Shown here piece by piece: positions 10,050 through 49,250 of a stretch of 64,000 bases of DNA. The notes under the pieces are model-generated. The model saw only the letters and a program-made list of their open reading frames with translations, was not told the origin of the DNA and did no database searches. The first letter of the stretch is position 1; each line of letters opens with the position of its first letter. The position numbers and the translations under genes are program-made. The DNA is taken from the sequence record OP079919.1; one strand, written 5' to 3'.

Positions 10050-10083
10050 AGTATAGTCCATCCCCTAGGGGATGGACTATACT
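10050..10083. terminator. Perfect 34-bp palindrome before the TSP array
   Basis: AGTATAGTCCATCCCCT-AGGGGATGGACTATACT; long T-tract downstream. Confidence 0.75.
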
Positions 10084-10112: not shown

Positions 10113-10120
10113 ATTTTATG
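10113..10120 (+). promoter_or_regulatory. Candidate late promoter motif ATTTTATG before TSP1
   Basis: Same octamer precedes TSP3, TSP6 and TSP9; TATG is the phiKZ late consensus. Confidence 0.4.
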
Positions 10121-10195: not shown

Positions 10196-12076
10196 ATGAC
10201 CACACCAACTCAACTACCGATACCCAGTAGCAATTTGCTGGATTCGAGATTTAACTTTGAGAAGTTAGACCAGATAGTAAACTCAGATGCCGATTTCTAT
10301 TTGGACCGTTTTGGCAAACAACGTCTTACCGTTTTGGGCGCCACCAATCAGCTCATCCAAAGCCTGAAAGATCAAACTGGTGCCAACAATGTAACCTACG
10401 TCAAATCCAAGGTGGATAAAGTACTGTCATCGATAGGGTATTCCCTTGACGTCATTCCAATGAATATCTTTGACAAGGCTTATTTGTGTTCGGGAACTGA
10501 CAACCCAGATCCTAATACTTGGATCTGGACCGCCGCCCTGCAGGGCGTTTTATCGGATATCGCTTCTTATAAGCTTTTTACCCTCAACGGAAATGACTAT
10601 TATACAACTTTCTCCCTACGAATACCTGGAGGGGTTTATCAGATCGACGATCTGGTTAGTTTGGGTAAGGTAGCAGGGACTGGAGGAGGAGCATCCTTTA
10701 GGACCAACATCGTTATCAACGGAGATGGAAAAAGCAGTTCGGTTCTTCGTCTTATAGGTGATGATAAACAATTGTTTAAATTCACAGAAAGCCGTTTAGT
10801 CATGAGGGATATAGGGCTTCAAACTAACGGGGCTCGTAACATAGGGATGGAATTAGGCGATCAAAATAATTGGGTCCCGATGGCCCACTCCCATCTTGAC
10901 AATGTTTCGATTACCGGATTTTGTCGCGGATTGCTAATAAGCCATTGCTTTGACAGCACGTTCGATTCTTTATTCATATCCGAGATAGCCGATACGGGTA
11001 ATGCGGTTATACCCGCTACCGGTATTGAAATTGCGCAGTTTTTAGGAAAAGATTCCTCTAACAATCCAGATAACTCTAACCAACTGACGTTTATTAACTG
11101 TGTAGTTGAGACGGCTAGGACCGATAACGCTATTTTGTTTTACGTCAACGGAATTAGTAAAAGTTATCCCCACCACGCCATCAACTTCTTAGGTGGGCAC
11201 CTGGAAACCCATAGACGGAACACGGTCTGTTATAAATTTAACAACATGGCCCTGTCAACCTTCACAGGAGTGACATTCAGTCAGAACGGCACTGATTCTA
11301 CTAACCCTGTAAACGTTGGGGTAATAACTGACTCCTGGAATATTATCTTTAATGGCGGAAGAACAGTAACCAATAATGCTAAAAACACTTACGATGATAC
11401 TTGGGATAAATTGATAACCGTAGCGGGATCTAGCATGGGGATCACGTACATGAATCATCATTTTATTACCCCATACCAGACGTATTCTTCGTATAACCGT
11501 AATGCCAACACCGTGTTCAATTTTACCGGGGCGACCGCGGGAATAAACGCCATCGATGCCGATCGCTGTAGATTGAACGACTTCACGTTCAAGCCGTTCA
11601 CCAAATCTATAGAAATAACCAGAATGGATTTGATTACTCAGCGTTTCAGGATATCCGTAAACACTTCTGGTAGTCTGGTTTTCGCGTACTCTAATGATGT
11701 TACTGGCGCCGCCGCTATGACGGATTTGGTAACCATCACCAATACAGGGAATGCGACTTTTCTTGGGTCCGTTACGGCAACTAACGTAACCGGGACGTCC
11801 GATGAGAGGTTAAAAACAGAAATAGGAGAAGTTGATCAAGTTTTAATTGATGTTGTTAAAAGTCTACGGCCTAAGAAGTATCGACTGAAAAACGACCCCC
11901 AAAACAAAATTAGAGTGGGATTCATCGCCCAAGACCTAATAGAACTTATGGATAAAGCTGGATTGGATTTCAAGAAATACAGTATTATCGCAGAGTTTAA
12001 TATTCCTGGGGATGATTCAGAAAACACGTATTATTCCTTGGACTATGATGAAATAATGTTGTTAAGATCCTTGTAG
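10196..12076 (+). CDS. Tailspike/depolymerase TSP1 with C-terminal peptidase S74 intramolecular chaperone
   Basis: Shared anchor (PTQ..IPSS..D.RFN.EKLDQIVNSD...DRFG..RLT), beta-helix-like core, TSDERLKTEI...GFIAQDL. Confidence 0.85.
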   Translation: MTTPTQLPIPSSNLLDSRFNFEKLDQIVNSDADFYLDRFGKQRLTVLGATNQLIQSLKDQTGANNVTYVKSKVDKVLSSIGYSLDVIPMNIFDKAYLCSGTDNPDPNTWIWTAALQGVLSDIASYKLFTLNGNDYYTTFSLRIPGGVYQIDDLVSLGKVAGTGGGASFRTNIVINGDGKSSSVLRLIGDDKQLFKFTESRLVMRDIGLQTNGARNIGMELGDQNNWVPMAHSHLDNVSITGFCRGLLISHCFDSTFDSLFISEIADTGNAVIPATGIEIAQFLGKDSSNNPDNSNQLTFINCVVETARTDNAILFYVNGISKSYPHHAINFLGGHLETHRRNTVCYKFNNMALSTFTGVTFSQNGTDSTNPVNVGVITDSWNIIFNGGRTVTNNAKNTYDDTWDKLITVAGSSMGITYMNHHFITPYQTYSSYNRNANTVFNFTGATAGINAIDADRCRLNDFTFKPFTKSIEITRMDLITQRFRISVNTSGSLVFAYSNDVTGAAAMTDLVTITNTGNATFLGSVTATNVTGTSDERLKTEIGEVDQVLIDVVKSLRPKKYRLKNDPQNKIRVGFIAQDLIELMDKAGLDFKKYSIIAEFNIPGDDSENTYYSLDYDEIMLLRSL

Positions 12077-12082
12077 TTTGGG

Positions 12083-12153
12083 AAATTGGGGGCGTATTTT
12101 TAACTAACGTACCATAACGTCCCCCCCCCACTCCAATTTAGTCAAACAAAGGG
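12083..12153 (+). promoter_or_regulatory. Conserved intergenic stem element, copy 1 (TSP1-TSP2)
   Basis: AATTGGGG...TTTTTAACNAACNTACCAT...CCAATT-AGTCAAANAAAGGG; contains C9. Confidence 0.6.
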
Positions 12154-12157
12154 TGTT

Positions 12158-14299
12158 ATGATGACGACTCCAACTAAGAACGACATTCCAAGCAATAATT
12201 TGTTGGATGCTCGTTTTAACTTTGAAAAGCTCGATCAGATTGTTAATAGCGACGCGAACTATTACCTTGATCGATTTGGTAAACAACGACTCACTTCGGC
12301 CGGATTGGAAGATTTAGCCAGACGATTATCTGAAGATTATGAATCCACCCTATCTAATCAGGATGGGTATAAGAAAATGGGGATGGTGTCTGATTTTACT
12401 ACTCTCAGAACTATCGCCCCAACAATGGAAGGTCAACGCATTCTGCTCAGGTCGGTTGACGCTGGTTCGAATAATGGATCGGGAGAGTTTATAGGACATT
12501 TAGGGAGCAATGGGGTTGACGACGGGGTTAATGTCGCGGTGGGATCCAACTTCTATTGGGAGAGGCTTTCGACTGATTTTGTTAAATCTTCTTCTATAGG
12601 TGATTACACTCGGATTAACTCCTTTATTTCAGCCGGAAATAAGAAGATCACTGTCGATGCCGATCTCAGCGGGTGGCTTAACGTCAAAAGTAACACCACG
12701 ATAACTTTTAACCCATTGTGTCGGCTGATACCTGATACCGATGACAAAGTCGGCATAAGTATTAGAGGAGCCGCCCCAACCTCCTATGTTAATCTAGCTA
12801 CTGATGCATTAGGGATAGATGGCTCAATTACCACCACTAATGACGTTTTTAACATTGGTGATTGGCTGGAAATTAGATCCAACAAGGTTCTTCCCGGCGC
12901 GAATTTTTATCAGGTTAAGCAATCTGTTTTACGCAAAGTGCTTCGTAAAACACAAAATGGAAATGGAACTTGGACATACCGTCTCCACAGTAGTTTAGGT
13001 TATAACTTTAACGTCAGCGACGGTGCTTCCGCTGGGGTTGCGACAGTATTGGAAAATATTGTTATCGATGGGGCTAACTTAAATAAAGACAATTTCACCA
13101 ATATCTTCACCATAGGGATAAACTGTTATTACGTTTATAACCTCACTATAAAAAATATCAACCTATTCGGAACAAAAGTAAAGGATTCTGCCTCAGACAC
13201 TCCAGGAAGATCCGGAATAAAACTGTATAATTGCGTTAACGTTAGAATCGATAATGTGAACGCCTCTTATATAGGGTGGTATGGTGTAGAGGTTATGGGA
13301 TGCAGTGAAAACGTAGATGTAAATCGTTTATACGGTGTGGATTGTCGACATACCGTTTCCATGAACTGGATCGAATCTGGCGACCTTTATGGTGGGCCTA
13401 TGTGGGTTTCGGTAAGGAACTCAGCAAGTCACGCTGCAAGATTAAGTGGGTTTGACACTCATGATCTAGGAAAGGGGATCGCATTTATTAATTGCCAGAG
13501 TTTCGATTCTGGTGATGATGGATTCCAAGTAAGGGCGATGGACACCGTTCTAATCGATTGCCATGCTGAAGGATCGACACTTGATGGCTTCGGCGGCGCT
13601 ACTGGCGCAAAGAACAGCAAATTAGTAAACTGTTCTTTCAACTACAACGTCAGATACGGAATTAATTTAGGTTATGAAGGCGGTATTGTTATCGACTGTG
13701 ACGTCGATAATAACGGTTACATGGGGATTTGTACCATCGGCGGACTCATTCAAGGAGGGTCGGTCACCAATAATTATCCGGCTGCTATCGATATAGGCGC
13801 CGGATTTAATGCCGCCCAAACCGATCTCAAAATCGATGGTGTTAGAATGCCCTCTTCGACCGCCCAGACAAAAATTTTGAGTTTTGCTGGTGACGCGGTA
13901 GCCGCTAACAACAAACCTGAGTTGGTTAGAATGGAAAATTGTTACGTTCCTGGTTACGGAAGAGATTGGGTCAGACTGGTATCGTTCACCGTCCAACCTT
14001 TACCCCCGGTGCTTAATAATAATCTACTTACTTCCAGCTTAACCTCCCCTGGAAAAATAAGCGGGCAAGTCCAATTATCTGCAGGGACAGCCACGGTGAC
14101 AACCACAGAGGTTTTCTCACAACTTGGTAGCGGTGCAAATGTTTTAAAATACTCATCGCAGATTAAGTTGAAACCTATCGCTCGTTCTGCCAATATAGGC
14201 GCTCATTATGTTTCAGCAATCAACAACGGGACGTCCTTTGTAATCAATTCAACCAATTCCTCGGATGGCTCGACCATTTATTGGGAAATAACACTTTAA
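12158..14299 (+). CDS. Tailspike/depolymerase TSP2 (pectate-lyase-like beta-helix)
   Basis: Shared anchor, TSP1/Gp66-type domain (EGQRILL..GSGEFIG..DDG..YWER), parallel beta-helix repeats. Confidence 0.85.
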   Translation: MMTTPTKNDIPSNNLLDARFNFEKLDQIVNSDANYYLDRFGKQRLTSAGLEDLARRLSEDYESTLSNQDGYKKMGMVSDFTTLRTIAPTMEGQRILLRSVDAGSNNGSGEFIGHLGSNGVDDGVNVAVGSNFYWERLSTDFVKSSSIGDYTRINSFISAGNKKITVDADLSGWLNVKSNTTITFNPLCRLIPDTDDKVGISIRGAAPTSYVNLATDALGIDGSITTTNDVFNIGDWLEIRSNKVLPGANFYQVKQSVLRKVLRKTQNGNGTWTYRLHSSLGYNFNVSDGASAGVATVLENIVIDGANLNKDNFTNIFTIGINCYYVYNLTIKNINLFGTKVKDSASDTPGRSGIKLYNCVNVRIDNVNASYIGWYGVEVMGCSENVDVNRLYGVDCRHTVSMNWIESGDLYGGPMWVSVRNSASHAARLSGFDTHDLGKGIAFINCQSFDSGDDGFQVRAMDTVLIDCHAEGSTLDGFGGATGAKNSKLVNCSFNYNVRYGINLGYEGGIVIDCDVDNNGYMGICTIGGLIQGGSVTNNYPAAIDIGAGFNAAQTDLKIDGVRMPSSTAQTKILSFAGDAVAANNKPELVRMENCYVPGYGRDWVRLVSFTVQPLPPVLNNNLLTSSLTSPGKISGQVQLSAGTATVTTTEVFSQLGSGANVLKYSSQIKLKPIARSANIGAHYVSAINNGTSFVINSTNSSDGSTIYWEITL

Positions 14300-14356
14300 C
14301 CTTTGCTGGATGGTGATTGGTCGACGCCGGTCTAAAACTAATTTGTTAGGGTCATT

Positions 14357-14392
14357 TAAAATCCAACCGGTCTTAAGACCGGTTGGATTTTA
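14357..14392. terminator. Perfect 36-bp palindrome between TSP2 and TSP3
   Basis: TAAAATCCAACCGGTCTT-AAGACCGGTTGGATTTTA. Confidence 0.75.
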
Positions 14393-14394
14393 TG
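14387..14394 (+). promoter_or_regulatory. Candidate late promoter motif before TSP3
   Basis: ATTTTATGCT. Confidence 0.4.
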
Positions 14395-14433
14395 CTTACC
14401 GATATTTCAACCTTCCTGACCCGAGGAATAGCA

Positions 14434-16665
14434 ATGACTTTACCAACGCAAAAACCTATTCCGAGTTCATCCATAACTGATCAATTATTTAATGCCGAAA
14501 AGATAGATCAGGTTGTTAACTCGGATGAACTAGAATATTCCGATCGTTTCGGAAAGAAACGATTCACCTTTTCAGGATTATACAACGTTGTACAGAATTG
14601 GATCAGCAGTTTGGGGTCAAGTTCCGGGGCGTCAGCTGTAGGTCTTAGCCAGGGCGGTACGGTTCAGGCCGGTCTCTACAACGTTGTTAATGTCGAACAA
14701 TTCGCTTATCTCAATACTTCAGATGATGATTGGGGTCCGGCTTTTAGAGGGGCCAGGGATAAAGCAATCGAGATATCTGCTCCGGTCGTTACTTTTAAAG
14801 GTCAGTACAAAATAAAAGTAAGCTCCGGTCCGACCACTCACACCCTGCCTTTCGACGACGGAACTTACGATACAAGAAGAACTGGCGAAGTTTTACTTTC
14901 TCCAGAAACCTTGAATACAATGCCTGTAGGATTGGAATGGCCTTCCGGACTCTCCCTTAAATCAGACGGGATCGGAAATAACTCAATTACTTTCGATTGG
15001 GATAATGCCACTGTTGGGCTGTCTCAGGGGATTGGTATCTGCATCAGGGTCAGAAACTGGGACGGAACTTATCTTGCTAAGGCCGGGTCAGTTAATCGCA
15101 TGAATAGCGATATAGCCAATGTGGAGTTTGATGGGTTTAGCGTAAATAATGCCTTTATCGGAATACTGGCCGACGGTATCGTGGGATCAGTCAGTTGGGG
15201 CAGTCTCCAGTTTAAGAAATGTTTCTTACCTATGACTTGGCAGGGCGCCGACAGATGCACGATTAAGAAACTGAGATTTACAGATTGTCCTACCGGATTC
15301 TCGGTAGGTGGATGGTGGCTGACCCGTAACGACATATCAGGATCCAATACCGGATTGGGGGTCCCGCCTTACATTGCAGGAACCGACGTGTACTGCATCG
15401 GATGGATGGACTTCGTTAAAATTGAATCTCTGGAGTACTCTAATAGTACTTCGTTTGACAATTCCCCGTTGTTTGCCGCGGTAGATACTTTCTTCGACAC
15501 CTATTTCTACAAAAGCGCGAACAGCGCTAGAACTGCTAGTGGTGGTCGATGCACTAATACAGGCCCTAACCTAACTAGCGCGAGTACGTTAGCGGCAGAT
15601 TCTCCGTTCTTAGGTATCGCCGGGCGCGCTCACTCACAAATGGGGCGTTACCACCGAAATCACATCTTGAATGAAATTATTTCTCTCAAGACGTGGGGAT
15701 GTTTCAGGGCATCAGTCCTTACCACTGCTAATGGAAACTCGGAGCTCAACGTCCCGGGGTGCATAGTGGGTACCGCGTACATCGAACAGGCCTGTAAGGT
15801 CACGGTTGGCGGTGACGCCACGGTGGGGGGAAGTAATGACTTCGTTACATCAGGTAAAGATGTTTGGAAAGGGACAAAAACTTATTCTAAGTATTATGCT
15901 GGTGAAGGATCCGTAATCGTTAAAGATGGATGGTCTGTTAATAGTTTGGGGTTGTTCCCGTCAGCGCGGACTGTTGCAAGAAATGATAATGGGTATAATA
16001 ACAGACTAAGAAGAACAATTGTCGACGATGGCACAGGGAAACCGGTCATACTCGAACAGCTTTCTGAAACGGTCTATGCGACCCCTCCTCAGAAATTTAT
16101 TCCTAACGCCGTGGGTTCAGTAGACGACAAATATTACTGGGTTCAACTAGAAAAGAACGTCTCTTCAAAGGCTACTATTTATTCTGGTGTTCCAACGACG
16201 GCGGCGCAAACACCTATAACCTCTCCGGCCATTAAAGTAATAATGGAACGTTTAGGTAACAGAGTTAAATTAAAAATTAATTTGGATGCGTCAAATTACG
16301 CAGCCGGCGGCAGTAATCCGGTGGTAATCGGATTTACTGGGGTCTATAAACCTATTCTTACTGCAAGTCCCGATTACGCCCTTGGGGCGTACGGTCCGGT
16401 GAGACCCATAATGGTCAGCACCAAAACATTTACAGTTACCGATTCTACTTCAGTGAGTCGGACGTTTAGGATCGAGCCGGTCGCGCATCAAGCTGGGGTA
16501 TTCACTGATGGCGGCGGGGTTAATAATTACTACTTTGTTTTGCTCACCCAGCATCATACTTCTGACACTAATAGACTGTTGTGGTCGGATTTCACCGGTT
16601 CGTTATGTCAGATAGAAATAGAATATGATACGAATGACGCTATCACTTCATCCAGCGTATTTTAA
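14434..16665 (+). CDS. Tailspike/depolymerase TSP3
   Basis: Start moved from 14383 to the ATG after GAGGA; shared anchor, DDWGPAF entry, beta-rich body. Confidence 0.8.
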   Translation: MTLPTQKPIPSSSITDQLFNAEKIDQVVNSDELEYSDRFGKKRFTFSGLYNVVQNWISSLGSSSGASAVGLSQGGTVQAGLYNVVNVEQFAYLNTSDDDWGPAFRGARDKAIEISAPVVTFKGQYKIKVSSGPTTHTLPFDDGTYDTRRTGEVLLSPETLNTMPVGLEWPSGLSLKSDGIGNNSITFDWDNATVGLSQGIGICIRVRNWDGTYLAKAGSVNRMNSDIANVEFDGFSVNNAFIGILADGIVGSVSWGSLQFKKCFLPMTWQGADRCTIKKLRFTDCPTGFSVGGWWLTRNDISGSNTGLGVPPYIAGTDVYCIGWMDFVKIESLEYSNSTSFDNSPLFAAVDTFFDTYFYKSANSARTASGGRCTNTGPNLTSASTLAADSPFLGIAGRAHSQMGRYHRNHILNEIISLKTWGCFRASVLTTANGNSELNVPGCIVGTAYIEQACKVTVGGDATVGGSNDFVTSGKDVWKGTKTYSKYYAGEGSVIVKDGWSVNSLGLFPSARTVARNDNGYNNRLRRTIVDDGTGKPVILEQLSETVYATPPQKFIPNAVGSVDDKYYWVQLEKNVSSKATIYSGVPTTAAQTPITSPAIKVIMERLGNRVKLKINLDASNYAAGGSNPVVIGFTGVYKPILTASPDYALGAYGPVRPIMVSTKTFTVTDSTSVSRTFRIEPVAHQAGVFTDGGGVNNYYFVLLTQHHTSDTNRLLWSDFTGSLCQIEIEYDTNDAITSSSVF

Positions 16666-16680
16666 CATTTAAGGTGTGAT

Positions 16681-18441
16681 ATGACGCTCCCAACTCAAAA
16701 CGCTGTTCCTAGTTCAGCTAAGAACGACCAGCTCTTTAATGCTGAAAAAATAGATCAGGTCGTCAATAGTGACGACCTCCAGTACACAGATCGCTTCGGT
16801 AAGAAGCGATTTACTTTCTCTGGTTTATACAACATAATCCAAACATGGGTTGCGAGTTTAAGTGATACCACCGGAGCAGGATCGGTCGGGATCGCGCAAG
16901 GGGGGTACATCCAGCAATCTCTTTTGGAAGTGACACCGATGATGCAAGGTGCCGTAGGAGACGGCGTCGCTGATGACTCACAGGCGTTGATCAAAACATT
17001 TACTACTGCTAAAACACTTGGATTGCGGGTTAAAATAGATCGCGCTTATCTTTGCTCCTCAGCGCTTGCCGTTTCTGGACCGCTATACTTAGAAGGAATC
17101 AACCCGGAAACAGGAAAAATTATTTTTACAAATAAAGATGACTTCGGTCTTTACATTACTCAGATCAAATCCACAGACTTCATAACCATAAAAAATATCA
17201 GCATTACGGCCGGAGCTAAAATCGTTAATCCAAAGGGCCTCCTAACCATCGACGGAAGCTCTCAATTAACAACTGATCAGTCGGCAGGCAAATACCTCTT
17301 AGCAGATAGGACAATCCGCCGCGGGCTGTTGGATAATGTTAATCTCGATTGCCTTAGTGGGAACTACGCGGTTAACTACCTTAACATTATTTCATGGATG
17401 AATTATTCCGTTAGAAACATATTGATAAGAGGGTCAAGGGACAACCTGTCGGCGCTCACTAATGGAATACTTTTAAACGGCGATGGTTTCCCCGTCGACA
17501 TCCACATGACCGACCTTTTGATGTATAACCTAGGTCGGGCTATTAACTCCGTGGATTACGTGGAAGGACTCCACATTTCAGAGTTTGAATTTGTAAACGT
17601 TTTAAGGGGGATTAGCGCCGATTACGACTCAAATTATTCCAAACTCAGCTCATCGGTATGCGGATGTTACGGACCTATGATTCACACGGGTCATGTAAAC
17701 CTGGGAACGATGACTGGCGCTGACTCATGCATTTACATTAAAAATACTGTCACTCCTCGTATCAAAGATCTTTTGCTTTTCAATAGCGCCGGCGCTGCCG
17801 TCACAAACAGTTACGGGGTTTACGTTTACGGATCAACCAGCGGTGGGGAAATATCCAGCGTTTATGTTGCGGGTGGTGGTGCCGCCAACACGAAGACCAA
17901 TAATTATTCAATTAGAGTATATGGCGCCAATGGATTAAACATCAAGGACTGTACCGGAAGCTATGCGGGAGCCGTAGTGTATCTTGAAGGGGTTTCCACT
18001 AACTGTGTCATATCAGGAAATAGTGGTATCAGCACCACTAACGTCGTTTATATTTTCAGTGCCAATAACGCCAACAATAAAATAACTTCTGATAACTCGG
18101 GAATAGGAATCACGGATAAGGTGGTCGGCGGAGATCCTAGCGGGTCTTATGTGGAACCTCTAATCTGGCAGAGGAAGTACACACTGAATTTAGCCGCGGC
18201 CAAAGATGCCGGGACGTCTTTCACTTTTAACGTCCCGATTCCCGGGGGAAATTTTGGTGTTGCTCCAGATGCCGCTTTCGCGACATTACCCTCCAATCTT
18301 ATCGGACAATTTTCATATAACCCTTCGGCCAGTTCAGCAACAAGTCTGAATGTAACCATTTATTTTATCTCGGCCGCAGCCATAGGGAGTTACGATATTT
18401 TAATTTCGGCAGCTGGTTTTGGCGTAAGCAGAACGCAATAA
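16681..18441 (+). CDS. Tailspike/depolymerase TSP4
   Basis: Shared anchor, GAVGDGVADDSQAL pectate-lyase-3-type start. Confidence 0.85.
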   Translation: MTLPTQNAVPSSAKNDQLFNAEKIDQVVNSDDLQYTDRFGKKRFTFSGLYNIIQTWVASLSDTTGAGSVGIAQGGYIQQSLLEVTPMMQGAVGDGVADDSQALIKTFTTAKTLGLRVKIDRAYLCSSALAVSGPLYLEGINPETGKIIFTNKDDFGLYITQIKSTDFITIKNISITAGAKIVNPKGLLTIDGSSQLTTDQSAGKYLLADRTIRRGLLDNVNLDCLSGNYAVNYLNIISWMNYSVRNILIRGSRDNLSALTNGILLNGDGFPVDIHMTDLLMYNLGRAINSVDYVEGLHISEFEFVNVLRGISADYDSNYSKLSSSVCGCYGPMIHTGHVNLGTMTGADSCIYIKNTVTPRIKDLLLFNSAGAAVTNSYGVYVYGSTSGGEISSVYVAGGGAANTKTNNYSIRVYGANGLNIKDCTGSYAGAVVYLEGVSTNCVISGNSGISTTNVVYIFSANNANNKITSDNSGIGITDKVVGGDPSGSYVEPLIWQRKYTLNLAAAKDAGTSFTFNVPIPGGNFGVAPDAAFATLPSNLIGQFSYNPSASSATSLNVTIYFISAAAIGSYDILISAAGFGVSRTQ

Positions 18442-18554
18442 TCTTTTAGTATTTAATAGATTGAGGGCGTGTAATCGATAATAACTGAGGGATGATGATT
18501 AAATTTATATTACGTCGACTTCATCCCAGATTGATCGTCATTTAGGAGTTTTCA

Positions 18555-20696: not shown

Positions 20697-20700
20697 TAAT

Positions 20701-20738
20701 TATTACTCCTTCTCCGGTTAACCGGAGAAGGAGTAATA
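20701..20738. terminator. Perfect 38-bp TACTCC-family palindrome between TSP5 and TSP6
   Basis: TATTACTCCTTCTCCGGTT-AACCGGAGAAGGAGTAATA. Confidence 0.75.
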
Positions 20739-20748
20739 GATACGTCCG

Positions 20749-20756
20749 ATTTTATG
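20749..20756 (+). promoter_or_regulatory. Candidate late promoter motif before TSP6
   Basis: ATTTTATGCT. Confidence 0.4.
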
Positions 20757-20821
20757 CTGATCTAAATTCAGTAGACTTGCGCAAGTCTTTTATACTACAT
20801 TCTTTTTAAAGGAGTAACCTC

Positions 20822-22711: not shown

Positions 22712-22719
22712 TGGTGAGC

Positions 22720-22749
22720 TAGGGGAGGGGGCGCCCTCCTCCCTTATTT
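22720..22749 (+). terminator. GC-rich hairpin between TSP6 and TSP7
   Basis: AGGGGAGG...CCTCC(T)CCCCT followed by TATTT. Confidence 0.6.
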
Positions 22750-22764
22750 ATGAGGTTTCTAAAA

Positions 22765-24480
22765 ATGACCACGCCTACCAATAATGACATTCCGAGCAGT
22801 TCGGTACAAGATAGGTTGTATAACGCCGAGAAATTTGATGAATTCATGAATTCATCGAACACTAATTTCACTGATCGCAAAGGAGTTTCACGATGGACAC
22901 TAAGCGGAATCAGAACTGTTATAAGTAACTGGATGACGAGTCTGAGTAGCAATGCAGGCGGAAACACCATAAAGGTCGATAATGCGCTACTACCAGACTT
23001 GGACTATGCGCCGAGCATTTTTAGATTTATGACCGACGCAGATATCGATTCGATGAAGAACACTCTGGGTAGCGAAGTTCCTGTCGATTACGCCTTACAA
23101 GCAGTTATCGATGCCGGTTATAAGTCAGTCAGATTCCCCCACAACGTTAAGGGCATCTATATTCTTTCTGGGTTGGTAACACTCCCTTCAGCCTTCACAA
23201 TCTTTGGAACGTGTTCCAAACCATATAGTAGTATTACCGACTCTTCCTTCTTAAATAAAGGGGTGACTTTACGTAAAGCCGTCGGGGCGGATTATCTGTT
23301 CGGAGCCGGTTCGGTATTCAGAATTTATGGGTGTAATCTAGATGGAAGAGACAACCTTCGCCCTCTAATCAACCAGACCAATCAAATACGCGGCGGAATA
23401 TTAGAAGATTGCGGGATCTACCGTTTTCTTTATGGAGTCGGGAGTTATGGTTACACCTCTATTGTTGTTAAACGATCATCCATTTGTTCAAATAACATAG
23501 GAATAAGGAACCTTATCGACAGCCGTATTATGGACGTTACCCTCAATGCCAATAAAGGTAACGGGGTCGATAACCAGGTCGGGGCCAATAATAATATTTT
23601 TGAAAACGTCAGGAATGAATGGAATGAAGGGATAGGGTATTATTTTTATGGGTCGGTGGGGAACATCATTACTGGTGAACTTATTGATAGATCTGGTTCG
23701 GCCAATGTTGTCGTCCTGGCCGGTGGATCCGCATTGATTTCAGGGGTTATCTCCCAACGACCCGCTCGTACGTTGAGTGAGGACTCAAGTTATAACACTC
23801 ATTTCTATGTGGCCGGAAGTAAATCAAAACTTTGTTTATCCGGTGTAACTACGGCAACGGGCATTGACGACGGGGGTACCGGAACTTTAACGCCACAAAG
23901 GACAATCGTGATAGGCGGGACGAATACCGACGTGACCGTTCTTTCTAGCGGGTGCGATTTATCGGGAAGTATTCTCTCGCCGTTAAGATTCGACGTTACT
24001 CCAGCTACGGTAGGATTTAGAAACAATATTGGCGTTGACGACTGGGTTAACACCGGGCAATATCAGTTCATCAAAGGAAGAGCGTCGATCGGTAGTCAGA
24101 AAAATGCGGTGATCTTGGCCAGTGGTGTGGGGAGTACCGCGACGTTAGTTTTTGATAACACAGGGTTCGTCGACCCCACTTCTAATTTCCCCGATATACC
24201 TAAGAAACGAAAAATTATCATAGAAAGCATGACTTCGGTATCGGCTTCCAGAACTGTAGGTTTTTATGAAGTTTCGTTATTGACCAGGCGTTTCTCTAGC
24301 ACTGCCGGTTTTGATGTCTTACAGGAAACATCTTATCCTGCTGGAGCGTGGGCGCGGACTACCGCAACTGGTGTTTCTATAAACATTGCCCTCTCAGCGG
24401 ACGCCAAACAGATAACAGTTACGCTAACCAACGTAGATGGCGTCGGAAGATTTATAGATGCTGCTCTTAAGTGGGATTAA
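22765..24480 (+). CDS. Tailspike/depolymerase TSP7
   Basis: ATG after GAGG; variant anchor (DRLYNAEKFDEFMNS..TDRKG.SRWTL), beta-helix with NNN.F.NVRNEWN. Confidence 0.85.
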   Translation: MTTPTNNDIPSSSVQDRLYNAEKFDEFMNSSNTNFTDRKGVSRWTLSGIRTVISNWMTSLSSNAGGNTIKVDNALLPDLDYAPSIFRFMTDADIDSMKNTLGSEVPVDYALQAVIDAGYKSVRFPHNVKGIYILSGLVTLPSAFTIFGTCSKPYSSITDSSFLNKGVTLRKAVGADYLFGAGSVFRIYGCNLDGRDNLRPLINQTNQIRGGILEDCGIYRFLYGVGSYGYTSIVVKRSSICSNNIGIRNLIDSRIMDVTLNANKGNGVDNQVGANNNIFENVRNEWNEGIGYYFYGSVGNIITGELIDRSGSANVVVLAGGSALISGVISQRPARTLSEDSSYNTHFYVAGSKSKLCLSGVTTATGIDDGGTGTLTPQRTIVIGGTNTDVTVLSSGCDLSGSILSPLRFDVTPATVGFRNNIGVDDWVNTGQYQFIKGRASIGSQKNAVILASGVGSTATLVFDNTGFVDPTSNFPDIPKKRKIIIESMTSVSASRTVGFYEVSLLTRRFSSTAGFDVLQETSYPAGAWARTTATGVSINIALSADAKQITVTLTNVDGVGRFIDAALKWD

Positions 24481-24505
24481 GTAGCTAAATTCCTTATTAG
24501 TAGTG

Positions 24506-24573
24506 GAATTGGGGTGTTTTTAACCAACTTACCATTGTCTTTTGCCTCCACCCCAATTCAGTCAAATAAAGGG
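24506..24573 (+). promoter_or_regulatory. Conserved intergenic stem element, copy 2 (TSP7-TSP8)
   Basis: 11-bp stem GAATTGGGGTG/CACCCCAATTC; same loop and 3' motifs as copy 1. Confidence 0.6.
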
Positions 24574-24577
24574 TTCA

Positions 24578-26311
24578 ATGATGACCGCACCGACTAATAA
24601 CAATGTACCGAGTAGCTCGGTTCAAGACAGATTGTACAATGCTGAAAAATTCGATGAATTTATGAATTCGGATAATCCCAATTATACCGATCGTAAGGGG
24701 AACTCCCGCTGGACTCTGAATGGGATAAGAATAGCCATATCCAATTGGATGACGTCATTGGGTACGTCAGTCGGGTCAGCCTATATTGGTAAAGGAAACG
24801 ATACTGTATCCAATCTTTTAGAGGCCTCCATCACTGAATATCTCACCGCTGAAGATCAAAATACACTCAGAAGTTCGTTGGGGGCGGAAGTCAATGTAGA
24901 TTATGCTTTAAAGGCAGCGATCGACGCAGGTATTCTCCGATTAAGATTCCCTAGGATGATAGGGATTTATGTTCTGGGCGCCGACCCTGTTACCCTTCCA
25001 ATAGGCTTTTCTATGGTCGGGGATAGAACCAGGTTATATACAGCGCCTTCCGATTCTACCTTTCTTAACAAGGGTACTGTGCTAAGATTAAGTTCCGGAG
25101 CCTCTTCGCTGTTCTTGTTAACTCAAAAGCATCAGTTTAGCGGAATTAATTTCGATGGCCGTGATAAAACGGTTAACTTAATGAAAGGAGCGGACCAAAC
25201 TCAATTCTGTAGGTTCTATAATTGCGGAATCCATCGATGGTTAAACGGATTGGGCGGATCTTCTTCAGGCGGATATACGGCTACACTTTCAGTATCTTTT
25301 TGTGATATTTCTGGAAATTATCGGGGCGTGCGTAATCTTATCGATTCCAAAATATCGGATAGTACCATTAACGCCAATGACACCAATGGGGTCGAACTTA
25401 ACGTAGGCGCCAATAACAACGTCTTTATTAATGTCAGAAACGAATGGAACAATGGCGTTAACTACTACGGGTATGGGGGTAAGCGCAACATCGTCGTCGG
25501 GGAGCTATGCGATCGAGCCGGACTCAACGGAATTGTTGCTGCGGGAGGCGCCCAGTGGTCCCTCGAAGGAGTGAATGTGCAGCGTTCGGGCAGGCTCGCC
25601 ACCCAGGGATCTGTCGACGACGCCCATTTCTATGTGACTGGTGAAGGATCATCTATCATAATGAGCGGAGTTTACACAACTCAAGGCTCTGACGATACAG
25701 GGGGTGGGAGAGTCTCCCCGTCGTACACTCTGGCTGGTGGAGGAAATTCATCTGACACGAAAACATTCTCGGCCGTGAACAGCGTCTTGAGCGGATTTGG
25801 GGTTTCAGCGATAAGACCTGGGTCCTCCACTTTCTCTAATATGAGCGTTGTGGGTTGTAACGGCTTTTACGATAGAATATCCGGAAACACAATAAATTTC
25901 TACGAAGGAAACTTCTCTTTGGGGAAAAGGGCTTCGTCGTTGAGTTTAAGTGGAACGGGTTCTACGGCACAGATCACATTCCCTACAACAGACTCGTTTC
26001 CGCAATACAGGGTGGGTTTTACCAGACAGTTGCATATAACAGCTAGGAACAACATCAATACGGGATCGGTCGCTTATTACAACGTCCCGCTATTCTTTTA
26101 TAGAGAACAATCGACCGCCGTTGTGCGAGCGAATACAAGTAAAGAAGAAACAATGGTGACCCTCAGCGGAGGAACTTGGGGTTTAACCGCGGCGTCCCCG
26201 ACCGGGGTCGCTATTGACCTGGCGGTTTCTTCTGATGGCCTGACGTTAACCGTAACGCTGACAGCCATCGATAACTCATCAAGAATCATTGATGTGGAAC
26301 TGAGGGCTTAA
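24578..26311 (+). CDS. Tailspike/depolymerase TSP8 (paralog of TSP7)
   Basis: Start moved to ATG after AAAGGG; same anchor subtype and core motifs as TSP7. Confidence 0.85.
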   Translation: MMTAPTNNNVPSSSVQDRLYNAEKFDEFMNSDNPNYTDRKGNSRWTLNGIRIAISNWMTSLGTSVGSAYIGKGNDTVSNLLEASITEYLTAEDQNTLRSSLGAEVNVDYALKAAIDAGILRLRFPRMIGIYVLGADPVTLPIGFSMVGDRTRLYTAPSDSTFLNKGTVLRLSSGASSLFLLTQKHQFSGINFDGRDKTVNLMKGADQTQFCRFYNCGIHRWLNGLGGSSSGGYTATLSVSFCDISGNYRGVRNLIDSKISDSTINANDTNGVELNVGANNNVFINVRNEWNNGVNYYGYGGKRNIVVGELCDRAGLNGIVAAGGAQWSLEGVNVQRSGRLATQGSVDDAHFYVTGEGSSIIMSGVYTTQGSDDTGGGRVSPSYTLAGGGNSSDTKTFSAVNSVLSGFGVSAIRPGSSTFSNMSVVGCNGFYDRISGNTINFYEGNFSLGKRASSLSLSGTGSTAQITFPTTDSFPQYRVGFTRQLHITARNNINTGSVAYYNVPLFFYREQSTAVVRANTSKEETMVTLSGGTWGLTAASPTGVAIDLAVSSDGLTLTVTLTAIDNSSRIIDVELRA

Positions 26312-26378
26312 GGTTATTTCCTACGAAGTGTTAATGCTATGAAGGTAAGGAGTTAACCCACACACAGCAGGTACTTAT

Positions 26379-27152
26379 ATGCATAATCGTAGTGTTAAGC
26401 GTGCTAACCGCGACGCTCGTCGCGAAGCAAGACGTCAAGATAAGTCCCAAAGTAGCCAACTGAAACTGGTGGACAGCAATTTCAGTGAAGTAAATCTACC
26501 TCTTGCAAAAGCTGATCGGAGTAAGATTGAGCCGAAAAACCCAATGCAGCAAAAATATTGGGATGGGTTACATGCCCACGATGTTGTCATCGGTATAGGG
26601 GAAGCGGGTAGCGGTAAAACGTTCCTCCCAACTTGTTATGCCGCGGAACGTCTGATGGCTAAAGACGTGGAAAAGATCATCGTTACACGGCCAGTTTTAC
26701 AGGCCGATGAAGATCTGGGTTTTCTCCCCGGGGATGTTAATGAGAAATTCGCACCTTACTTCCGACCGGTCTACGATATCTTACTGAAACGCCTGGGTGG
26801 TGGAATGCTCAACTATTGCATGAAGCCTGGCGTGGAGAAAGTTGAAGTCGCCCCCTTTGCTTTTATGAGAGGTCGTACTTTTTCTGACTCAGTAGTGATT
26901 CTTGACGAAGCGCAAAACGTTACAGTCATGCAGATGAAAATGTTCATCACTCGTATGGGTGAGAACACTACGGTAATCATCAACGGCGACCTTACCCAGT
27001 GCGATCTTCCTAAAGGAGTTAAATCCGGTCTGGAAGATCTGCTGGAACGCATCGAACGAGATCCTGAAAATGGATTCCCGGTTTATCGTTTCAACGCCGC
27101 TGATAGTGTGCGGTCAGATATTTGCTCCAAAGCCCTGAAGCTTTACAAATAA
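26379..27152 (+). CDS. phoH: PhoH-like ATPase
   Basis: GEAGSGKT, IIVTRPV, LGFLPGD..EK, FMRGRTF, DEAQN, GD.TQ.D. Confidence 0.95.
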   Translation: MHNRSVKRANRDARREARRQDKSQSSQLKLVDSNFSEVNLPLAKADRSKIEPKNPMQQKYWDGLHAHDVVIGIGEAGSGKTFLPTCYAAERLMAKDVEKIIVTRPVLQADEDLGFLPGDVNEKFAPYFRPVYDILLKRLGGGMLNYCMKPGVEKVEVAPFAFMRGRTFSDSVVILDEAQNVTVMQMKMFITRMGENTTVIINGDLTQCDLPKGVKSGLEDLLERIERDPENGFPVYRFNAADSVRSDICSKALKLYK

Positions 27153-27157
27153 GTCCT

Positions 27158-27194
27158 AATAACTCCTATTCCCTTATCGGGAATAGGAGTTATT
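27158..27194. terminator. TACTCC-family hairpin after phoH
   Basis: 16-bp stem, TTATC loop. Confidence 0.8.
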
Positions 27195-27242
27195 TTAAAC
27201 GCGCCACGGCCATTTATGAACTTTTCATAAGAGACTGTAATC

Positions 27243-27710
27243 ATGAACCTCATGTACGATAATTACTACGGAAAAGAAATAATTGGATTGGGTTTAGAGG
27301 GAGAAGTCATCACAATGTTAAATTTGGCGATGACTGACATTAATCACTTCGCTAAGAAAAGTATCGCTAAAGACATCAACCCCTATCCGTTCAATCTGGA
27401 AGATTTTAAACACAACCGTTTAAACGAACACTACTTCCTCGTTTTTGATGGGAAGAAAATAGCGTCGATTCTATCCGTCGTTTACGCTTTAGAGCATCAT
27501 CTCAAAATAGCTAAAATCTTTAACGTTTATACGTTACCGGAGTATCGCCATAAAGGGCTTGCTAAACGCAACCTAATCGCCGCTATCGTGTCGGCAAGAT
27601 CAAATGGGTACATTGTGCAGTTAAACGTTTACAGGTCTAATAAAGCCGCTCAGAGGCTTTACAAGAGCCTTAAATTTAAACCCGTCGAATACACTATGCA
27701 GCTCGGTTAA
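27243..27710 (+). CDS. GNAT acetyltransferase
   Basis: VYTLPEYRHKGLA and V..SNKAAQRLYKSL.F. Confidence 0.85.
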   Translation: MNLMYDNYYGKEIIGLGLEGEVITMLNLAMTDINHFAKKSIAKDINPYPFNLEDFKHNRLNEHYFLVFDGKKIASILSVVYALEHHLKIAKIFNVYTLPEYRHKGLAKRNLIAAIVSARSNGYIVQLNVYRSNKAAQRLYKSLKFKPVEYTMQLG

Positions 27711-27810
27711 TTTTAACGACCATAATGTTTTATTGGTAATAAACGAGAATACGTTGTTTTAAACATCGGTTTGAAATAACACGTTCTCATTTTAAACTGT
27801 AAAATAAAAG

Positions 27811-28608
27811 GTGAATGGAATGAAAGTGACTAAAGAAGAATTGATTGAACGCTTTAATCTAGTAATAGAAAAAGAAGATATTAATTTCAGTGATGGGAGT
27901 GATTCGCTTAAACTGGTCTTAGACAACCCTAAGATGACCTCTCAGGCGTTCGAGAATATAGTGGGGTGGTTAACAGAGATCCTATTCGTTGGGAGCAACC
28001 TGATACATATTAGCGAAGAAACATCATTAACTGGCGTGATTTTCTTAAACGATTTAACAAGCTACTCCAAAAAACTTCATTTAAATAACTCCCGGGTTCA
28101 TCGCACCAATATTTCAAATTTGGCTCAGTGCACCATTGCCGACTCCAAACTCCAAGATGTTTCGATTACGTCGAACGGGGAATTTGGGGAAGGAATTACT
28201 ATTAAATACAGTGATCTTATCGGCTGCGATTTGGTCAATGACTTTATTGATCACAGTTATATCATCAACAGAGATTTGACCGGAAGAACGACTTTGAGGA
28301 ATTGCCGAGTTGCGCACTCCAGACTTTTCTTTGGACTGCAAACGATAACGAATAAAAGATTCTCGTCCGTTATTATCGACGCCCCTCAATTTAGCGGCGA
28401 TTATTTCTCCATCGGATTAAATGGAGAAAGCACCGTAGGGTATATCAATGGAACCGAAAAAGTCATCGTAGCGGGTGAGAAGAGATATAACCTGGGGAGT
28501 TGGGAAGAACAATTTGTTAAGAAAGAACAAAATTTATTCATTAAAATGATGAATCAAAAGAAATTAGAAATGATGAATATGTTCTTCGATAGTTTGGCGT
28601 TTAAATAA
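27811..28608 (+). CDS. Hypothetical protein with short beta-repeat character
   Basis: Long ORF; start may be ATG 27820. Confidence 0.65.
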   Translation: MNGMKVTKEELIERFNLVIEKEDINFSDGSDSLKLVLDNPKMTSQAFENIVGWLTEILFVGSNLIHISEETSLTGVIFLNDLTSYSKKLHLNNSRVHRTNISNLAQCTIADSKLQDVSITSNGEFGEGITIKYSDLIGCDLVNDFIDHSYIINRDLTGRTTLRNCRVAHSRLFFGLQTITNKRFSSVIIDAPQFSGDYFSIGLNGESTVGYINGTEKVIVAGEKRYNLGSWEEQFVKKEQNLFIKMMNQKKLEMMNMFFDSLAFK

Positions 28609-28614
28609 TAAAGT

Positions 28615-28650
28615 TTTACTCTACCTCGCGATATCGCGAGGTAGAGTAAA
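28615..28650. terminator. Perfect 36-bp palindrome, bidirectional terminator between convergent genes
   Basis: TTTACTCTACCTCGCGAT-ATCGCGAGGTAGAGTAAA. Confidence 0.8.
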
Positions 28651-28654
28651 TTGT

Positions 28655-31225
28655 TTAACTTACATAAATGGAAGTTAACGATAACTGAGAGAATATCCCT
28701 GAAATGTACGCCTGAACGCCTCGTGTCCCTACGGTGTAGCGATCAATAAAACTATTCATTTGGGTCGAACTAGTTCCTGAATAGTCAGTCCCTGAAACCG
28801 ACACGGAGGTTGTTCCCGATAGAGTATTGACTGAACTGGTAATATTAGTGGCGATGGATCTCGCCAAAATACCACTTCCGGGATAGTCAATTTTAAAAAC
28901 ATCAAAAAAGGTATTACCGGATTGCAAATGGGTGGCCTGCAGACAATTTCCTTTGGCCACATACAAAGCGCCGGACCAACTGCTATTATTTACTCCGGTA
29001 TTCCAGATCATCAGAGAAGAAATTGGTGTACCTGAGTTATTATAATAGGAGCAGTCACTTAACCGGAACCATTGGGCTAAATTCAAATTAGATGATGTGA
29101 CCGAACTTAACGAGTAGTCGCCGGAAAAACTTACCCCTGACGCTTTCAGTCTGTGAAGGAACGCCGAATCGGCGGTCGTTAAAGGCAAATTAGTCCCTGA
29201 TTTGACACTCCCTCCCCTCATGTTAATTTCTACACGTTGATTGGCTTCCTGGGTGCCGTCGTTGGTAATGAACCTTGATAACTCACAGTCGTTGAAATTA
29301 TAGGACCCCCTTTGTGAGATTCTCACTAGGGTGGGGGTGCCGTTGTAATTGGGGTTGTGTAATCTCCTAGCGTCGAGCCTGATATTGTGTTGAAATCCGT
29401 AAGATGGACGTTTGATAATTAAATTATCCACCCCTACGTTGTTCATACTGACTTTCATGTCGATAGGTTCGAACATAGTGTCGGTCGATGCAGAAGTATT
29501 GCTTGCCCTGGGCTTCGTGTTGGTGAAATCAATTTTTAACGTCCCGCCGGCGGCGTAGGTAACGTTGTCAAATCGAATATTCATAGGAGGAGTAACCGTT
29601 CCGTCGCGGTTTATCCAATAAATATTTTGAAGGCAACTAGAAGCTTCCGGAGTCTCAATAGTCAAGCCATCAATATCTATTTTATTAAATAGCTCACCGG
29701 CCATCTGAGACCCAGTAGGTAAAGAAGTGTAATTATCGGCGGCTCCCTGTACAATGGACCCTTCTCCATTGGACGCTAAACTGTAATATTTCCAAAATCC
29801 TCTGACCCTGACGTTACGCATAATCAGCGTCCCATCGGTGATTCCTCCGGAAGTAGTCCTGGCCTGCACAAGTGAAGGGAAAAGAAATTTTCCGTAGTAA
29901 GGGTCTCCGGATCCTCTCCCCAGTTCGTATACTGTGTCAAGTATCTCGAGAGTTGAGTTTTTAGTACCTAAGAAAACAGCAGCTCCGTCACCAATCTTGC
30001 AGTTTACAAGTTTGTAATATCCGATGCTTGGGTTATGGCTATCGAAGTTGTTGGCCGAGCAATTATCAAAAATGGTATCGGCTATCCAACCGGCCGCGGA
30101 TATCGACCCCCATCCGTAGCCAAACGCGTTTACGTTTCTTACGTATAACTTCGCCCCCCACCCATGGTGGAGTGTGTAAGATGCATAAGTGGTCGTTTGA
30201 TCCGAGGAAGAAAAGGAAGCGGTTGGGTGAGCGTCGTAGATGAAATCCACGTAGGTGTTGTAGTAATACTGAATGTCGATAACGTGACGTGATCCTATTT
30301 CCGTAATCGGTTTATTGAGTATTCTCCCCTCTTTTATGATCAAGTTGGACACATAAAAGAACTGGAAGAATATAGGTCTAGGCCCATAACGATAGTCGAC
30401 GTCCGGCATAATAAATTCACTGAAACCAGCCTGGATAGGTAGCGCCGATATGCTAGTAATCGACGTCCCGTTGTAAGGGAAGACGTTATCCATTTTGCCG
30501 TTAGCACTTATCCTGGTTACGTGAGCGAGTTTCTGAGTTTTTGCGCCAGCTTGGGTTTGTGTGCTATTATAAACATATAGGTCGTCTGAAAAATTCATAA
30601 TGACCATGCTGTCGTTTAAAGTCGTGTCCGATCCCAACGAATCTAAACAACCGTTTCCGCTTAAGAAGTCTGTGGAGGCATTAGTATTTAACTTAGTTAC
30701 CACGGAAGATCCGGAGGCATGGTTAACTAATCCGCTCGATTGAGAGATCCAGAAAGTCCCGGTAAAATCAGCCGCCGGAATAATTTTCATTCCCCCTAAA
30801 TCGGTCTTCTTATTATCGATGATCCAGTTAAACTTGGCGTTACCGGAAATCAAGTACTCACCAGATTTTTGTTTTATAGGAATGCCCGTCAATGTCGACA
30901 ATTGAATAAGGGCTAAAAGTTTGTCGGTGACGTCAACATCCCCCGTGTTCTCTATACCAAACATGTCACAGGAAAGAAATGTTTGAAGGTTAGAGACTTT
31001 ACCTCCATAAGGAAGATTTATAATTGACGACCCGTCCCCTCCGGTTAAAACATTCAGGGTTTCCTGGACGGCCGCCGCTACCCCCTTAGCGGTCAATCTC
31101 TGGTTACCAAAACGATCAGTATAGGTATTCTCATCGGAATTAATGATCTCATCTAACTTTTCGGCATTAAATCTAACATCTATAGCGGTGCTACTGGGTA
31201 TACCATTTTGTGTTGGAGTCGTCAT
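28655..31225 (-). CDS. Tailspike/depolymerase TSP9 (inverted, solitary)
   Basis: Anchor MTTPTQNGIPSS..D.RFNAEKLDEIINSD..YTDRFG.QRLT; beta-rich 856 aa; GGAGGGAG SD. Confidence 0.85.
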   Translation of the reverse strand: MTTPTQNGIPSSTAIDVRFNAEKLDEIINSDENTYTDRFGNQRLTAKGVAAAVQETLNVLTGGDGSSIINLPYGGKVSNLQTFLSCDMFGIENTGDVDVTDKLLALIQLSTLTGIPIKQKSGEYLISGNAKFNWIIDNKKTDLGGMKIIPAADFTGTFWISQSSGLVNHASGSSVVTKLNTNASTDFLSGNGCLDSLGSDTTLNDSMVIMNFSDDLYVYNSTQTQAGAKTQKLAHVTRISANGKMDNVFPYNGTSITSISALPIQAGFSEFIMPDVDYRYGPRPIFFQFFYVSNLIIKEGRILNKPITEIGSRHVIDIQYYYNTYVDFIYDAHPTASFSSSDQTTTYASYTLHHGWGAKLYVRNVNAFGYGWGSISAAGWIADTIFDNCSANNFDSHNPSIGYYKLVNCKIGDGAAVFLGTKNSTLEILDTVYELGRGSGDPYYGKFLFPSLVQARTTSGGITDGTLIMRNVRVRGFWKYYSLASNGEGSIVQGAADNYTSLPTGSQMAGELFNKIDIDGLTIETPEASSCLQNIYWINRDGTVTPPMNIRFDNVTYAAGGTLKIDFTNTKPRASNTSASTDTMFEPIDMKVSMNNVGVDNLIIKRPSYGFQHNIRLDARRLHNPNYNGTPTLVRISQRGSYNFNDCELSRFITNDGTQEANQRVEINMRGGSVKSGTNLPLTTADSAFLHRLKASGVSFSGDYSLSSVTSSNLNLAQWFRLSDCSYYNNSGTPISSLMIWNTGVNNSSWSGALYVAKGNCLQATHLQSGNTFFDVFKIDYPGSGILARSIATNITSSVNTLSGTTSVSVSGTDYSGTSSTQMNSFIDRYTVGTRGVQAYISGIFSQLSLTSIYVS

Positions 31226-31293: not shown

Positions 31294-31301
31294 CATAAAA
31301 T
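31294..31301 (-). promoter_or_regulatory. Candidate late promoter motif before TSP9
   Basis: CATAAAAT on plus strand = ATTTTATG on minus strand. Confidence 0.4.
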
Positions 31302-48086: not shown

Positions 48087-48104
48087 TTACTCAAAGGAAA
48101 TATC

Positions 48105-48722: not shown

Positions 48723-48768
48723 TAATCTTTGTGGGTGGGGTTTCCCACCCCCTATTTAGGAGAAAATT

Positions 48769-49044: not shown

Positions 49045-49250
49045 TCACGGAGATAGTAACTATCGTACTATGTTACTTCGCCGGAGGGTGGTTTTTACAT
49101 TTACTCTGGTGGCGTAATCAGAGAGCTCCAAAAGAAGGCTACGTCAAAACGTTATTCAAAGCCTGGCTTAGTCCTATATGGCATCTGTTTATTCTTATCG
49201 GCCATGCGTTCAAACGGGTAAGTGAATTCTTTTTGGAAATCTTTAAGTAG
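49041..49250 (+). CDS. Small membrane protein
   Basis: ATGA coupling; hydrophobic segments. Confidence 0.65.
   Translation: MITEIVTIVLCYFAGGWFLHLLWWRNQRAPKEGYVKTLFKAWLSPIWHLFILIGHAFKRVSEFFLEIFK

Follow-up and report, generated by a model that had tools for sequence, protein, structure and literature searches.

To our knowledge, the mounting of multiple receptor-binding proteins on one phage has been detailed structurally in only a few systems, all of them with large branching domains. In the branched systems of phiK64-1, RaK2 and FBKp24, and in the TSP1-4 complexes of the CBA120-type Ackermannviridae, the spikes attach to one another via long N-terminal docking domains. In the podophages SP6 and K1-5, one adaptor carries two alternative tailspikes, whose short conserved N-termini plug into this separate protein. 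Here we describe an array of nine tailspike genes in a 64-kb window (the whole stretch of DNA analysed, 64,000 nt), which is 100% identical to bases 62001-126000 of record OP079919.1 and belongs to Klebsiella phage KPN8, a myovirus with a 256.6-kb genome and K. pneumoniae KLEB009 as isolation host. Like the branched systems, KPN8 is predicted to carry many different depolymerase spikes per virion, and several spike bodies of KPN8 and of its relative Miami are homologous to spike bodies of phiK64-1 or RaK2. Unlike the spikes of those systems, however, each of its spikes bears no more than a helical anchor of 55 aa, and it seems to be the partner protein that provides the multiplicity; no homology was found between the attachment parts of KPN8 and those of the branched systems. 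The KPN8 arrangement would work much like that of SP6 and K1-5, with six classes of spike instead of two spikes.

The attachment parts of KPN8 resemble those of the Shigella siphophage Sf11 (tailspike gp13 and distal tail protein gp17; PDB 9OCC; Subramanian, Dover and Parent, J Virol 2025). In Sf11, one adaptor helix of gp17 is enclosed by a helical bundle made of the three N-terminal segments of the spike trimer, with salt bridges from spike Arg16 and Lys19 to gp17 glutamates; the adaptor helix is short and located at the end of the distal tail protein core, and the hexameric ring bears six spike trimers (PMC12724387). Pairs of this type are also present in siphophages of about 45-50 kb that infect Salmonella, Klebsiella, Escherichia, Erwinia and Aeromonas. 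KPN8 shares with them a homologous anchor and an adaptor motif on a tail protein encoded in the same genome. In phages of the Sf11 type, the tail is non-contractile, there is a single spike gene and the distal tail protein bears a single adaptor helix, whereas KPN8 is a contractile-tailed jumbo phage whose nine spikes fall into six classes and whose six adaptors stand in tandem on KPN8_39, an unrelated fibre/baseplate protein of phiKZ type. We conclude that KPN8, a jumbo myovirus, has a multiplexed version of the anchor-adaptor pair known from Sf11, and we estimate at roughly 0.55 the probability that the tail of KPN8_39 is a six-peg rack that holds the spike classes. What is new here are the six anchor classes, the purifying selection that acts on them, their differences at contact positions and the six-copy adaptor tail of KPN8_39.

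Nine open reading frames (ORFs), of 571-856 aa when counted from the first Met of the anchor, open with one common N-terminal module, in which an alignment of the nine KPN8 N-termini had 18 invariant columns within the first 62 residues. A profile of this module scored every one of the nine with E = 1e-27 to 4e-34, and tblastn and phmmer searches of the whole KPN8 genome found exactly nine anchored ORFs. Since there are exactly nine profile-supported copies genome-wide, the shared module is not a chance likeness, and the claim of a preliminary description of this DNA, that nine ORFs share one short N-terminal anchor, was borne out. Eight of the genes lie head to tail on the plus strand and the ninth (spike F) lies on the minus strand, past three conserved genes. 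The proteins begin to diverge at about residue 50-75 (about residue 143 in one gene). The genes, with their anchors of about 58 codons, are as follows.

10196-12076, plus strand: spike A1 (KPN8_72), 626 aa, class-A anchor at 10196-10369
12158-14299, plus strand: spike A2 (KPN8_73), 713 aa, class-A anchor at 12161-12334
14434-16665 (ORF from 14383), plus strand: spike B1 (KPN8_74), class-B anchor at 14434-14607
16681-18441, plus strand: spike B2 (KPN8_75), 586 aa, class-B anchor at 16681-16854
18555-20696, plus strand: spike C (KPN8_76), 713 aa, class-C anchor at 18555-18728
20822-22711, plus strand: spike D (KPN8_77), 629 aa, GTG start, class-D anchor at 20822-20995, followed by a neck
22765-24480 (annotated from 22750), plus strand: spike E1 (KPN8_78), class-E anchor at 22765-22938
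24578-26311 (annotated from 24542), plus strand: spike E2 (KPN8_79), class-E anchor at 24581-24754
28655-31225, minus strand: spike F (KPN8_83), 856 aa, class-F anchor at 31052-31225

The sequence Met-Thr-x-Pro-Thr is most likely the N-terminus of all nine proteins, and three start codons were corrected on this basis. The GenBank start of KPN8_74, at 14611, cuts away the entire anchor; the true start of B1 is probably the ATG at 14434, which has an upstream GAGG and fits the other eight spikes. For E1, the ATG at 22765 is more likely than the annotated start at 22750, which adds 5 extra residues, and for E2 the ATG at 24578 or 24581 is more likely than the TTG at 24542, which adds 12-13.

Searched against the PDB, a profile of the nine anchors matched one sequence, residues 3-61 of Sf11 gp13 (9OCC, E = 7.6e-22), and pairwise phmmer comparisons of each anchor with this protein gave E values from 2e-9 to 8e-14. 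The region matched by the KPN8 anchors corresponds to gp13 residues 4-59, which are modelled in 9OCC (PMC12724387). The AlphaFold2 (AF2) model of the anchor consisted of a helix (residues 14-29), a hairpin (34-44) and a second helix (46-58), with a predicted local distance difference test (pLDDT) score of 84-91 over residues 11-50. A Foldseek search of the PDB with this model retrieved only the gp13 chains of 9OCC (G and I-L), with template modelling (TM) scores of 0.82-0.88 and root-mean-square deviations of 1.2-1.7 A. The KPN8 anchor is therefore homologous, in sequence and in predicted fold, to the tailspike anchor of Sf11, and its predicted fold is a known one.

The anchor was present in 233 phage records, nearly all of them from enterobacterial siphophages of 45-50 kb with one copy each; only seven of these records, all from Miami-like phages, contained several anchors per genome. 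When multi-anchor genomes were sought in IMG/VR, 32 contigs of siphophage size carried the anchor, in single copy each. Klebsiella phage Miami, the closest relative of KPN8, is listed as Miamivirus, Chimalliviridae, and KPN8 probably has the same placement. Together with phiKp_32, YC1, Raoultella phage VB_ZK_P1 and 'Stenotrophomonas' phage BUCTxx100, Miami forms a set of five relatives whose common backbone is 87-97% identical to that of KPN8 at the nucleotide level. These five phages have the same array and the same class order as KPN8; they differ from it in having five to eight array genes and almost entirely different bodies.

The candidate partner of the anchors is encoded elsewhere in the genome.

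48072-51287 of the KPN8 genome (locus L017:72-3287), outside the window: KPN8_39, 1071 aa

KPN8_39 first came to notice through a weak double match (E ~5) when KPN8 was searched with the Sf11 distal tail protein. It is paralogous to KPN8_35, KPN8_37 and KPN8_38, which are tail-fibre/virion proteins of phiKZ type; it adjoins a baseplate-assembly gene, and its homologue is annotated as 'minor tail protein' in two relatives. Its last 115 residues form six tandem repeats with a period of 19-20 aa (motif copies at residues 967-1069), each of them acidic and ending in D-x-h-h-N-x-x-h-P-(E/D/S), where h is hydrophobic. The six repeats, hereafter pegs, differ from one another. The tail they form is 97.6-99.5% identical across the six phages and lies beyond the end of the PHROG family profile. 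It was without counterpart in the jumbo-phage orthologues, since in Pseudomonas phage phiRU the protein stops precisely at the point where the repeats would start, and in Erwinia phage Joad it has an unrelated C-terminus of 150 aa; by sequence comparison, the six-repeat tail is found only in Miami-like phages. In a metagenomic relative with a tail 56% identical, on a contig that stops just past the gene, pegs 1-5 were retained one for one.

In siphophages, the anchor and the adaptor motif occur together. A distal tail protein homologue was also encoded at 34 of the 36 siphophage loci with an anchored spike, the two exceptions being short contigs of about 5 kb, and the adaptor motif closed every distal-tail-protein tail examined, in most cases at the very C-terminus of a protein of some 160 aa. 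A homologue search with the Sf11 adaptor region itself returned only proteins 95-100% identical to it. No homologue of the Sf11 distal-tail-protein core, which spans residues 1 to about 120, was present among the KPN8 six-frame ORFs; KPN8_39 thus lies outside the Sf11 gp17 family, because only the short adaptor motif is common to both. An independent adaptor profile, built from 14 distinct siphophage tails only and run against the same ORFs with composition correction off, ranked KPN8_39 first (E = 0.0033, the next at 0.84) and detected all six repeats. Moreover, an ungapped scan with a position-specific scoring matrix over 180,598 positions placed pegs at ranks 1, 2, 3, 5 and 8, and a generalised adaptor motif occurred four times in the six-frame ORFs, each time in the KPN8_39 tail (shuffle mean 0.77). 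One core, hydrophobic-D-x-x-hydrophobic-N, is common to the pegs, the adaptor helix of Sf11 and the helix of the anchor, which suggests that the adaptor helix may join the bundle as the mimic of a fourth anchor. A covariation of Asn and Thr between anchor helix and adaptor helix across siphophages was judged by eye and dropped, mismatches being about as many as matches.

We then compared all 41 anchored ORFs of the six phages. Their anchors fell into six classes, always in the order A, B, C, D, E on the plus strand and then F on the minus strand.

KPN8: A A B B C D E E F
Miami: A D E F, and one protein without anchor
phiKp_32: A B B C D E F, one class-C gene shortened, with one break
YC1: A B C C D E F
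VB_ZK_P1: A B C D E E F, one class-E gene shortened, with one break
BUCTxx100: A B B C D E F

Classes A, B and E thus have two members each in KPN8. The Miami protein without anchor, gp093 (L009:3338-5017, 559 aa, phrog_16942, similar to RaK2 gp525), follows the class-A spike immediately; it may be carried by this neighbour or be attached in another manner.

Over the first 50 residues, anchors were 76-100% identical within a class and 47-67% identical between classes. When the anchors of classes A, B, C, E and F were compared between phages, the median proportion of synonymous differences (pS) was 0.69-0.81, which is saturated, and the proportion of nonsynonymous differences (pN) was 0.11-0.18, while the neighbouring backbone gene PhoH, used as control, had a pS of 0.13. 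These values indicate that the anchor classes are old and that the protein is kept by purifying selection, which is more than recent descent. Because synonymous sites are saturated compared with a backbone pS of 0.13, the spike genes, including their anchors, come from a pool much older than the backbone; despite this older pool, every slot always carries an anchor of its own class. The exception is the class-D anchor, with a pS of 0.12 and first 50 residues 100% identical in all six phages, which by this measure belongs to the backbone. Class-D spikes stayed similar through the neck to about residue 141-148, after which their bodies diverged; in spikes of the same class, similarity stopped at about residue 51-76 (about 143 in class D), and only five shared body pairs were found among the 41 spikes. 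Fifteen anchor positions were invariant across the 41 proteins and 14 were class-diagnostic, the latter including both positions homologous to the adaptor-contacting Arg16 and Lys19 of Sf11.

In the six-peg rack that we favour, each copy of KPN8_39 would offer six pegs, and the anchors of one spike trimer would wrap each of them. The six anchor classes would address six different pegs, and where a class is duplicated (A, B and E in KPN8) its two members would compete for one peg type, so that a virion with several racks could present all nine enzymes, three of the peg types being of mixed occupancy. New specificities would be acquired when bodies, or entire spike genes, are exchanged behind an anchor that stays true to its class. 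The strict form of this addressing, one class to one peg, which would make an ordered six-position hetero-multivalent receptor-binding organelle that is refillable by gene exchange, is a tentative proposal, possible rather than probable. Interchange or competition is plausible only between members of one class.

Several points weigh against the rack. The binding of anchor to peg is read from sequence; the AF2 model of a KPN8_39 homologue was unusable (pLDDT 31), and the copy number of KPN8_39 and its location in the virion are deduced from its neighbours and from PHROG names only. Six trimers would have to fit pegs spaced 19 aa apart, which raises questions of sterics and stoichiometry. The statistical support depends on composition correction being off, as the adaptor profile did not report KPN8_39 under the HMMER default correction; searches of KPN8 with a single sequence and with a four-sequence profile were not significant, nor was a search of the siphophage loci with a profile of the pegs, and the generalised motif was composed after the KPN8_39 tail had been viewed. 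Moreover, all six pegs are present in Miami, whose KPN8_39 tail is 99.5% identical, although its anchors belong to four classes only (A, D, E and F), so that the number of pegs does not track the number of classes. The distal tail protein of Pseudomonas phage PS-1 (L016:2264-2770) ends in two tandem adaptor motifs 21 aa apart, and only one anchored fibre was found in this phage, so that pegs need not have distinct partners.

The last two points are also what an interchangeable plug-in would lead us to expect, in which any of the nine anchors fits any peg, or any of many equivalent sites, and virions are random mosaics. The six classes would then be a trace of descent and of homologous recombination in a syntenic array and would have nothing to do with addressing; homologous recombination alone would preserve the gene order, and the 15 positions invariant in all 41 anchors likewise speak for this reading. 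However, class-specific residues have persisted despite saturated synonymous sites, the positions homologous to the Sf11 contact residues are class-diagnostic, and the pegs are mutually different and conserved one for one in the relative whose tail is 56% identical. We therefore consider full interchangeability unlikely. The preliminary description had proposed that the spikes plug interchangeably into a separate hub or into many equivalent sites. The hub gained support from the Sf11-type anchor, which docks on a helix of another protein in 9OCC, and from KPN8_39, a candidate with six such helices encoded elsewhere in the genome; interchangeability and equivalence of the sites were not supported, given six old classes in a fixed order, conserved at the protein level and differing at the adaptor-contact positions.

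Less likely again is that the anchors dock on another tail or baseplate protein of KPN8, one without recognisable motif, and that the KPN8_39 repeats serve otherwise. In favour of this, pegs and siphophage adaptors are alike over a short stretch only, and with marginal significance, but nowhere in the genome does the motif occur outside the KPN8_39 tail, which is also the first-ranked match of the independent profile; in addition, this tail is confined to the lineage with anchored spikes and sits on a tail-fibre paralogue adjoining a baseplate gene. Classical branching, in which one spike would serve the rest as a scaffold in the manner of the TSP complex of the Ackermannviridae or of the fibres of phiK64-1/RaK2, is highly improbable, despite the anchorless protein after the class-A spike of Miami and the label 'branched multi-fiber arrangement' given to Miami, by analogy only, in a 2026 survey that counts six receptor-binding proteins, five of them enzymatic, since all nine KPN8 spikes carry the same short anchor, none has an N-terminal region longer than about 145 aa ahead of its body (bodies or necks begin at residue 50-145), in agreement with the earlier view that no long branching N-terminus is evident, and none matched a docking-domain family in Pfam or PHROG.

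Behind the anchors, the bodies of seven of the nine spikes resembled solved structures of depolymerases or tailspikes, either over most of the body or over part of it. The body of A2 is similar to K1-capsule lyases (9K4A, E = 7.8e-113; 7W1C, 1.8e-91), with K1-lyase Rider and C domains, and is 99% identical to the body of the phiKp_32 class-A spike. The central part of B1 is similar to a KN1-specific depolymerase (9M4C/9M4D; 9M4D, 1.2e-21; partial), while the neck and the start of the body of B2 are similar to gp150 of phage phi92 (6E0V, 7.8e-15; partial), with PHROG matches to pectate-lyase and colanic-acid-degradation families. The body of spike D resembles K2-type tailspikes (8IQE/8IQ5, about 5e-58, and also 7XYC), and that of E1 resembles a Klebsiella phage 'type I tail fiber' (7XY1, 8.5e-34; phrog_6518). 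E2, whose body is 39% identical to that of E1, is counted through E1 only. The body of spike F resembles the solved tail spike 8X8M (6.6e-51), and the whole spike is 99.6% identical to Miami gp099. The two others, A1 (10196-12076) and C (18555-20696), matched PHROG tail-protein families only (phrog_27613 and phrog_9383, respectively); A1 ends in a Peptidase_S74 intramolecular chaperone (PF13884, 9.5e-14), and its sole PDB match was the 9OCC anchor, without any match for the body. The beta-helix-type bodies expected by the preliminary description were thus supported for most of the spikes, those other than A1 and C, and its notion of anchor-plus-enzyme tailspikes fits the common anchor joined to bodies with predicted depolymerase or tailspike character. 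PHROG alignments showed the same bodies borne on other, longer N-termini in other phages, which is ordinary module shuffling. A broad capsule range for KPN8 is plausible from the K1-, K2- and KN1-type homologies. Miami plaques are haloed (PMC13709898), so that polysaccharide-degrading activity is published for relatives only; the KPN8 paper does not mention the spike array.

An 8-mer, ATTTTATG, was found at just four sites in the window, each 40-76 nt upstream of a spike start codon, and hairpins lay between several of the genes.

10113-10120, plus strand: ATTTTATG, upstream of spike A1
14387-14394, plus strand: ATTTTATG, upstream of spike B1
20749-20756, plus strand: ATTTTATG, upstream of spike D
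31294-31301, minus strand: ATTTTATG, upstream of spike F
28615-28650: 16-bp palindromic hairpin between convergent KPN8_82 and spike F, likely a bidirectional terminator
10050-10083, 14367-14386 and 22722-22741: further hairpins with T-runs

We infer that the four ATTTTATG sites are probably phage promoters that divide the array into four transcription units. A scan for sigma-70 promoters returned fewer sites than shuffled controls and was set aside as irrelevant for a phage with its own RNA polymerases; the KPN8 annotation includes split RNA polymerase subunits, as well as a tubulin-like protein. The leaders of A2 (12040-12175) and E2 (24460-24595) are 82% identical over about 135 nt, double ATG included, which suggests that these two extra genes arrived with a common 5' leader.

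Three genes separate class E from class F in all six phages.

26379-27152, plus strand: PhoH-like ATPase
27243-27710, plus strand: acetyltransferase-like gene
27811-28608, plus strand: gene of unknown function

At 58182-59987 of the window, KPN8_142 and KPN8_143 are annotated as NadR-like and PnuC-like (salvage of nicotinamide adenine dinucleotide and uptake of nicotinamide mononucleotide), as described for other jumbo phages. In phiKp_32 (LC768500.1, locus L010), two TnpB genes of IS200/IS605 type flank the region of the spike array, one upstream and the other just after it, which is unusual for a nucleus-forming jumbo phage. BUCTxx100 (OR529409.1, 59554-85898, locus L013) is recorded as a phage of Stenotrophomonas maltophilia; its backbone is 92-94% identical to that of the Klebsiella phages and it has the same array, with seven anchored spikes, so that the host label deserves a check.

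These data suggest that, in what is probably a nucleus-forming jumbo phage, the attachment of a whole set of receptor-binding proteins may come down to an anchor of 55 aa and a peg of 19 aa, repeated sixfold. The module has evidently moved between unrelated tail types, from the non-contractile tail of siphophages to the contractile baseplate of a jumbo phage. If the six-peg rack is true, it would explain how a near-complete turnover of capsule specificities goes together with one invariant rack, and the architecture of a receptor-binding complex would become readable from sequence alone in new genomes.

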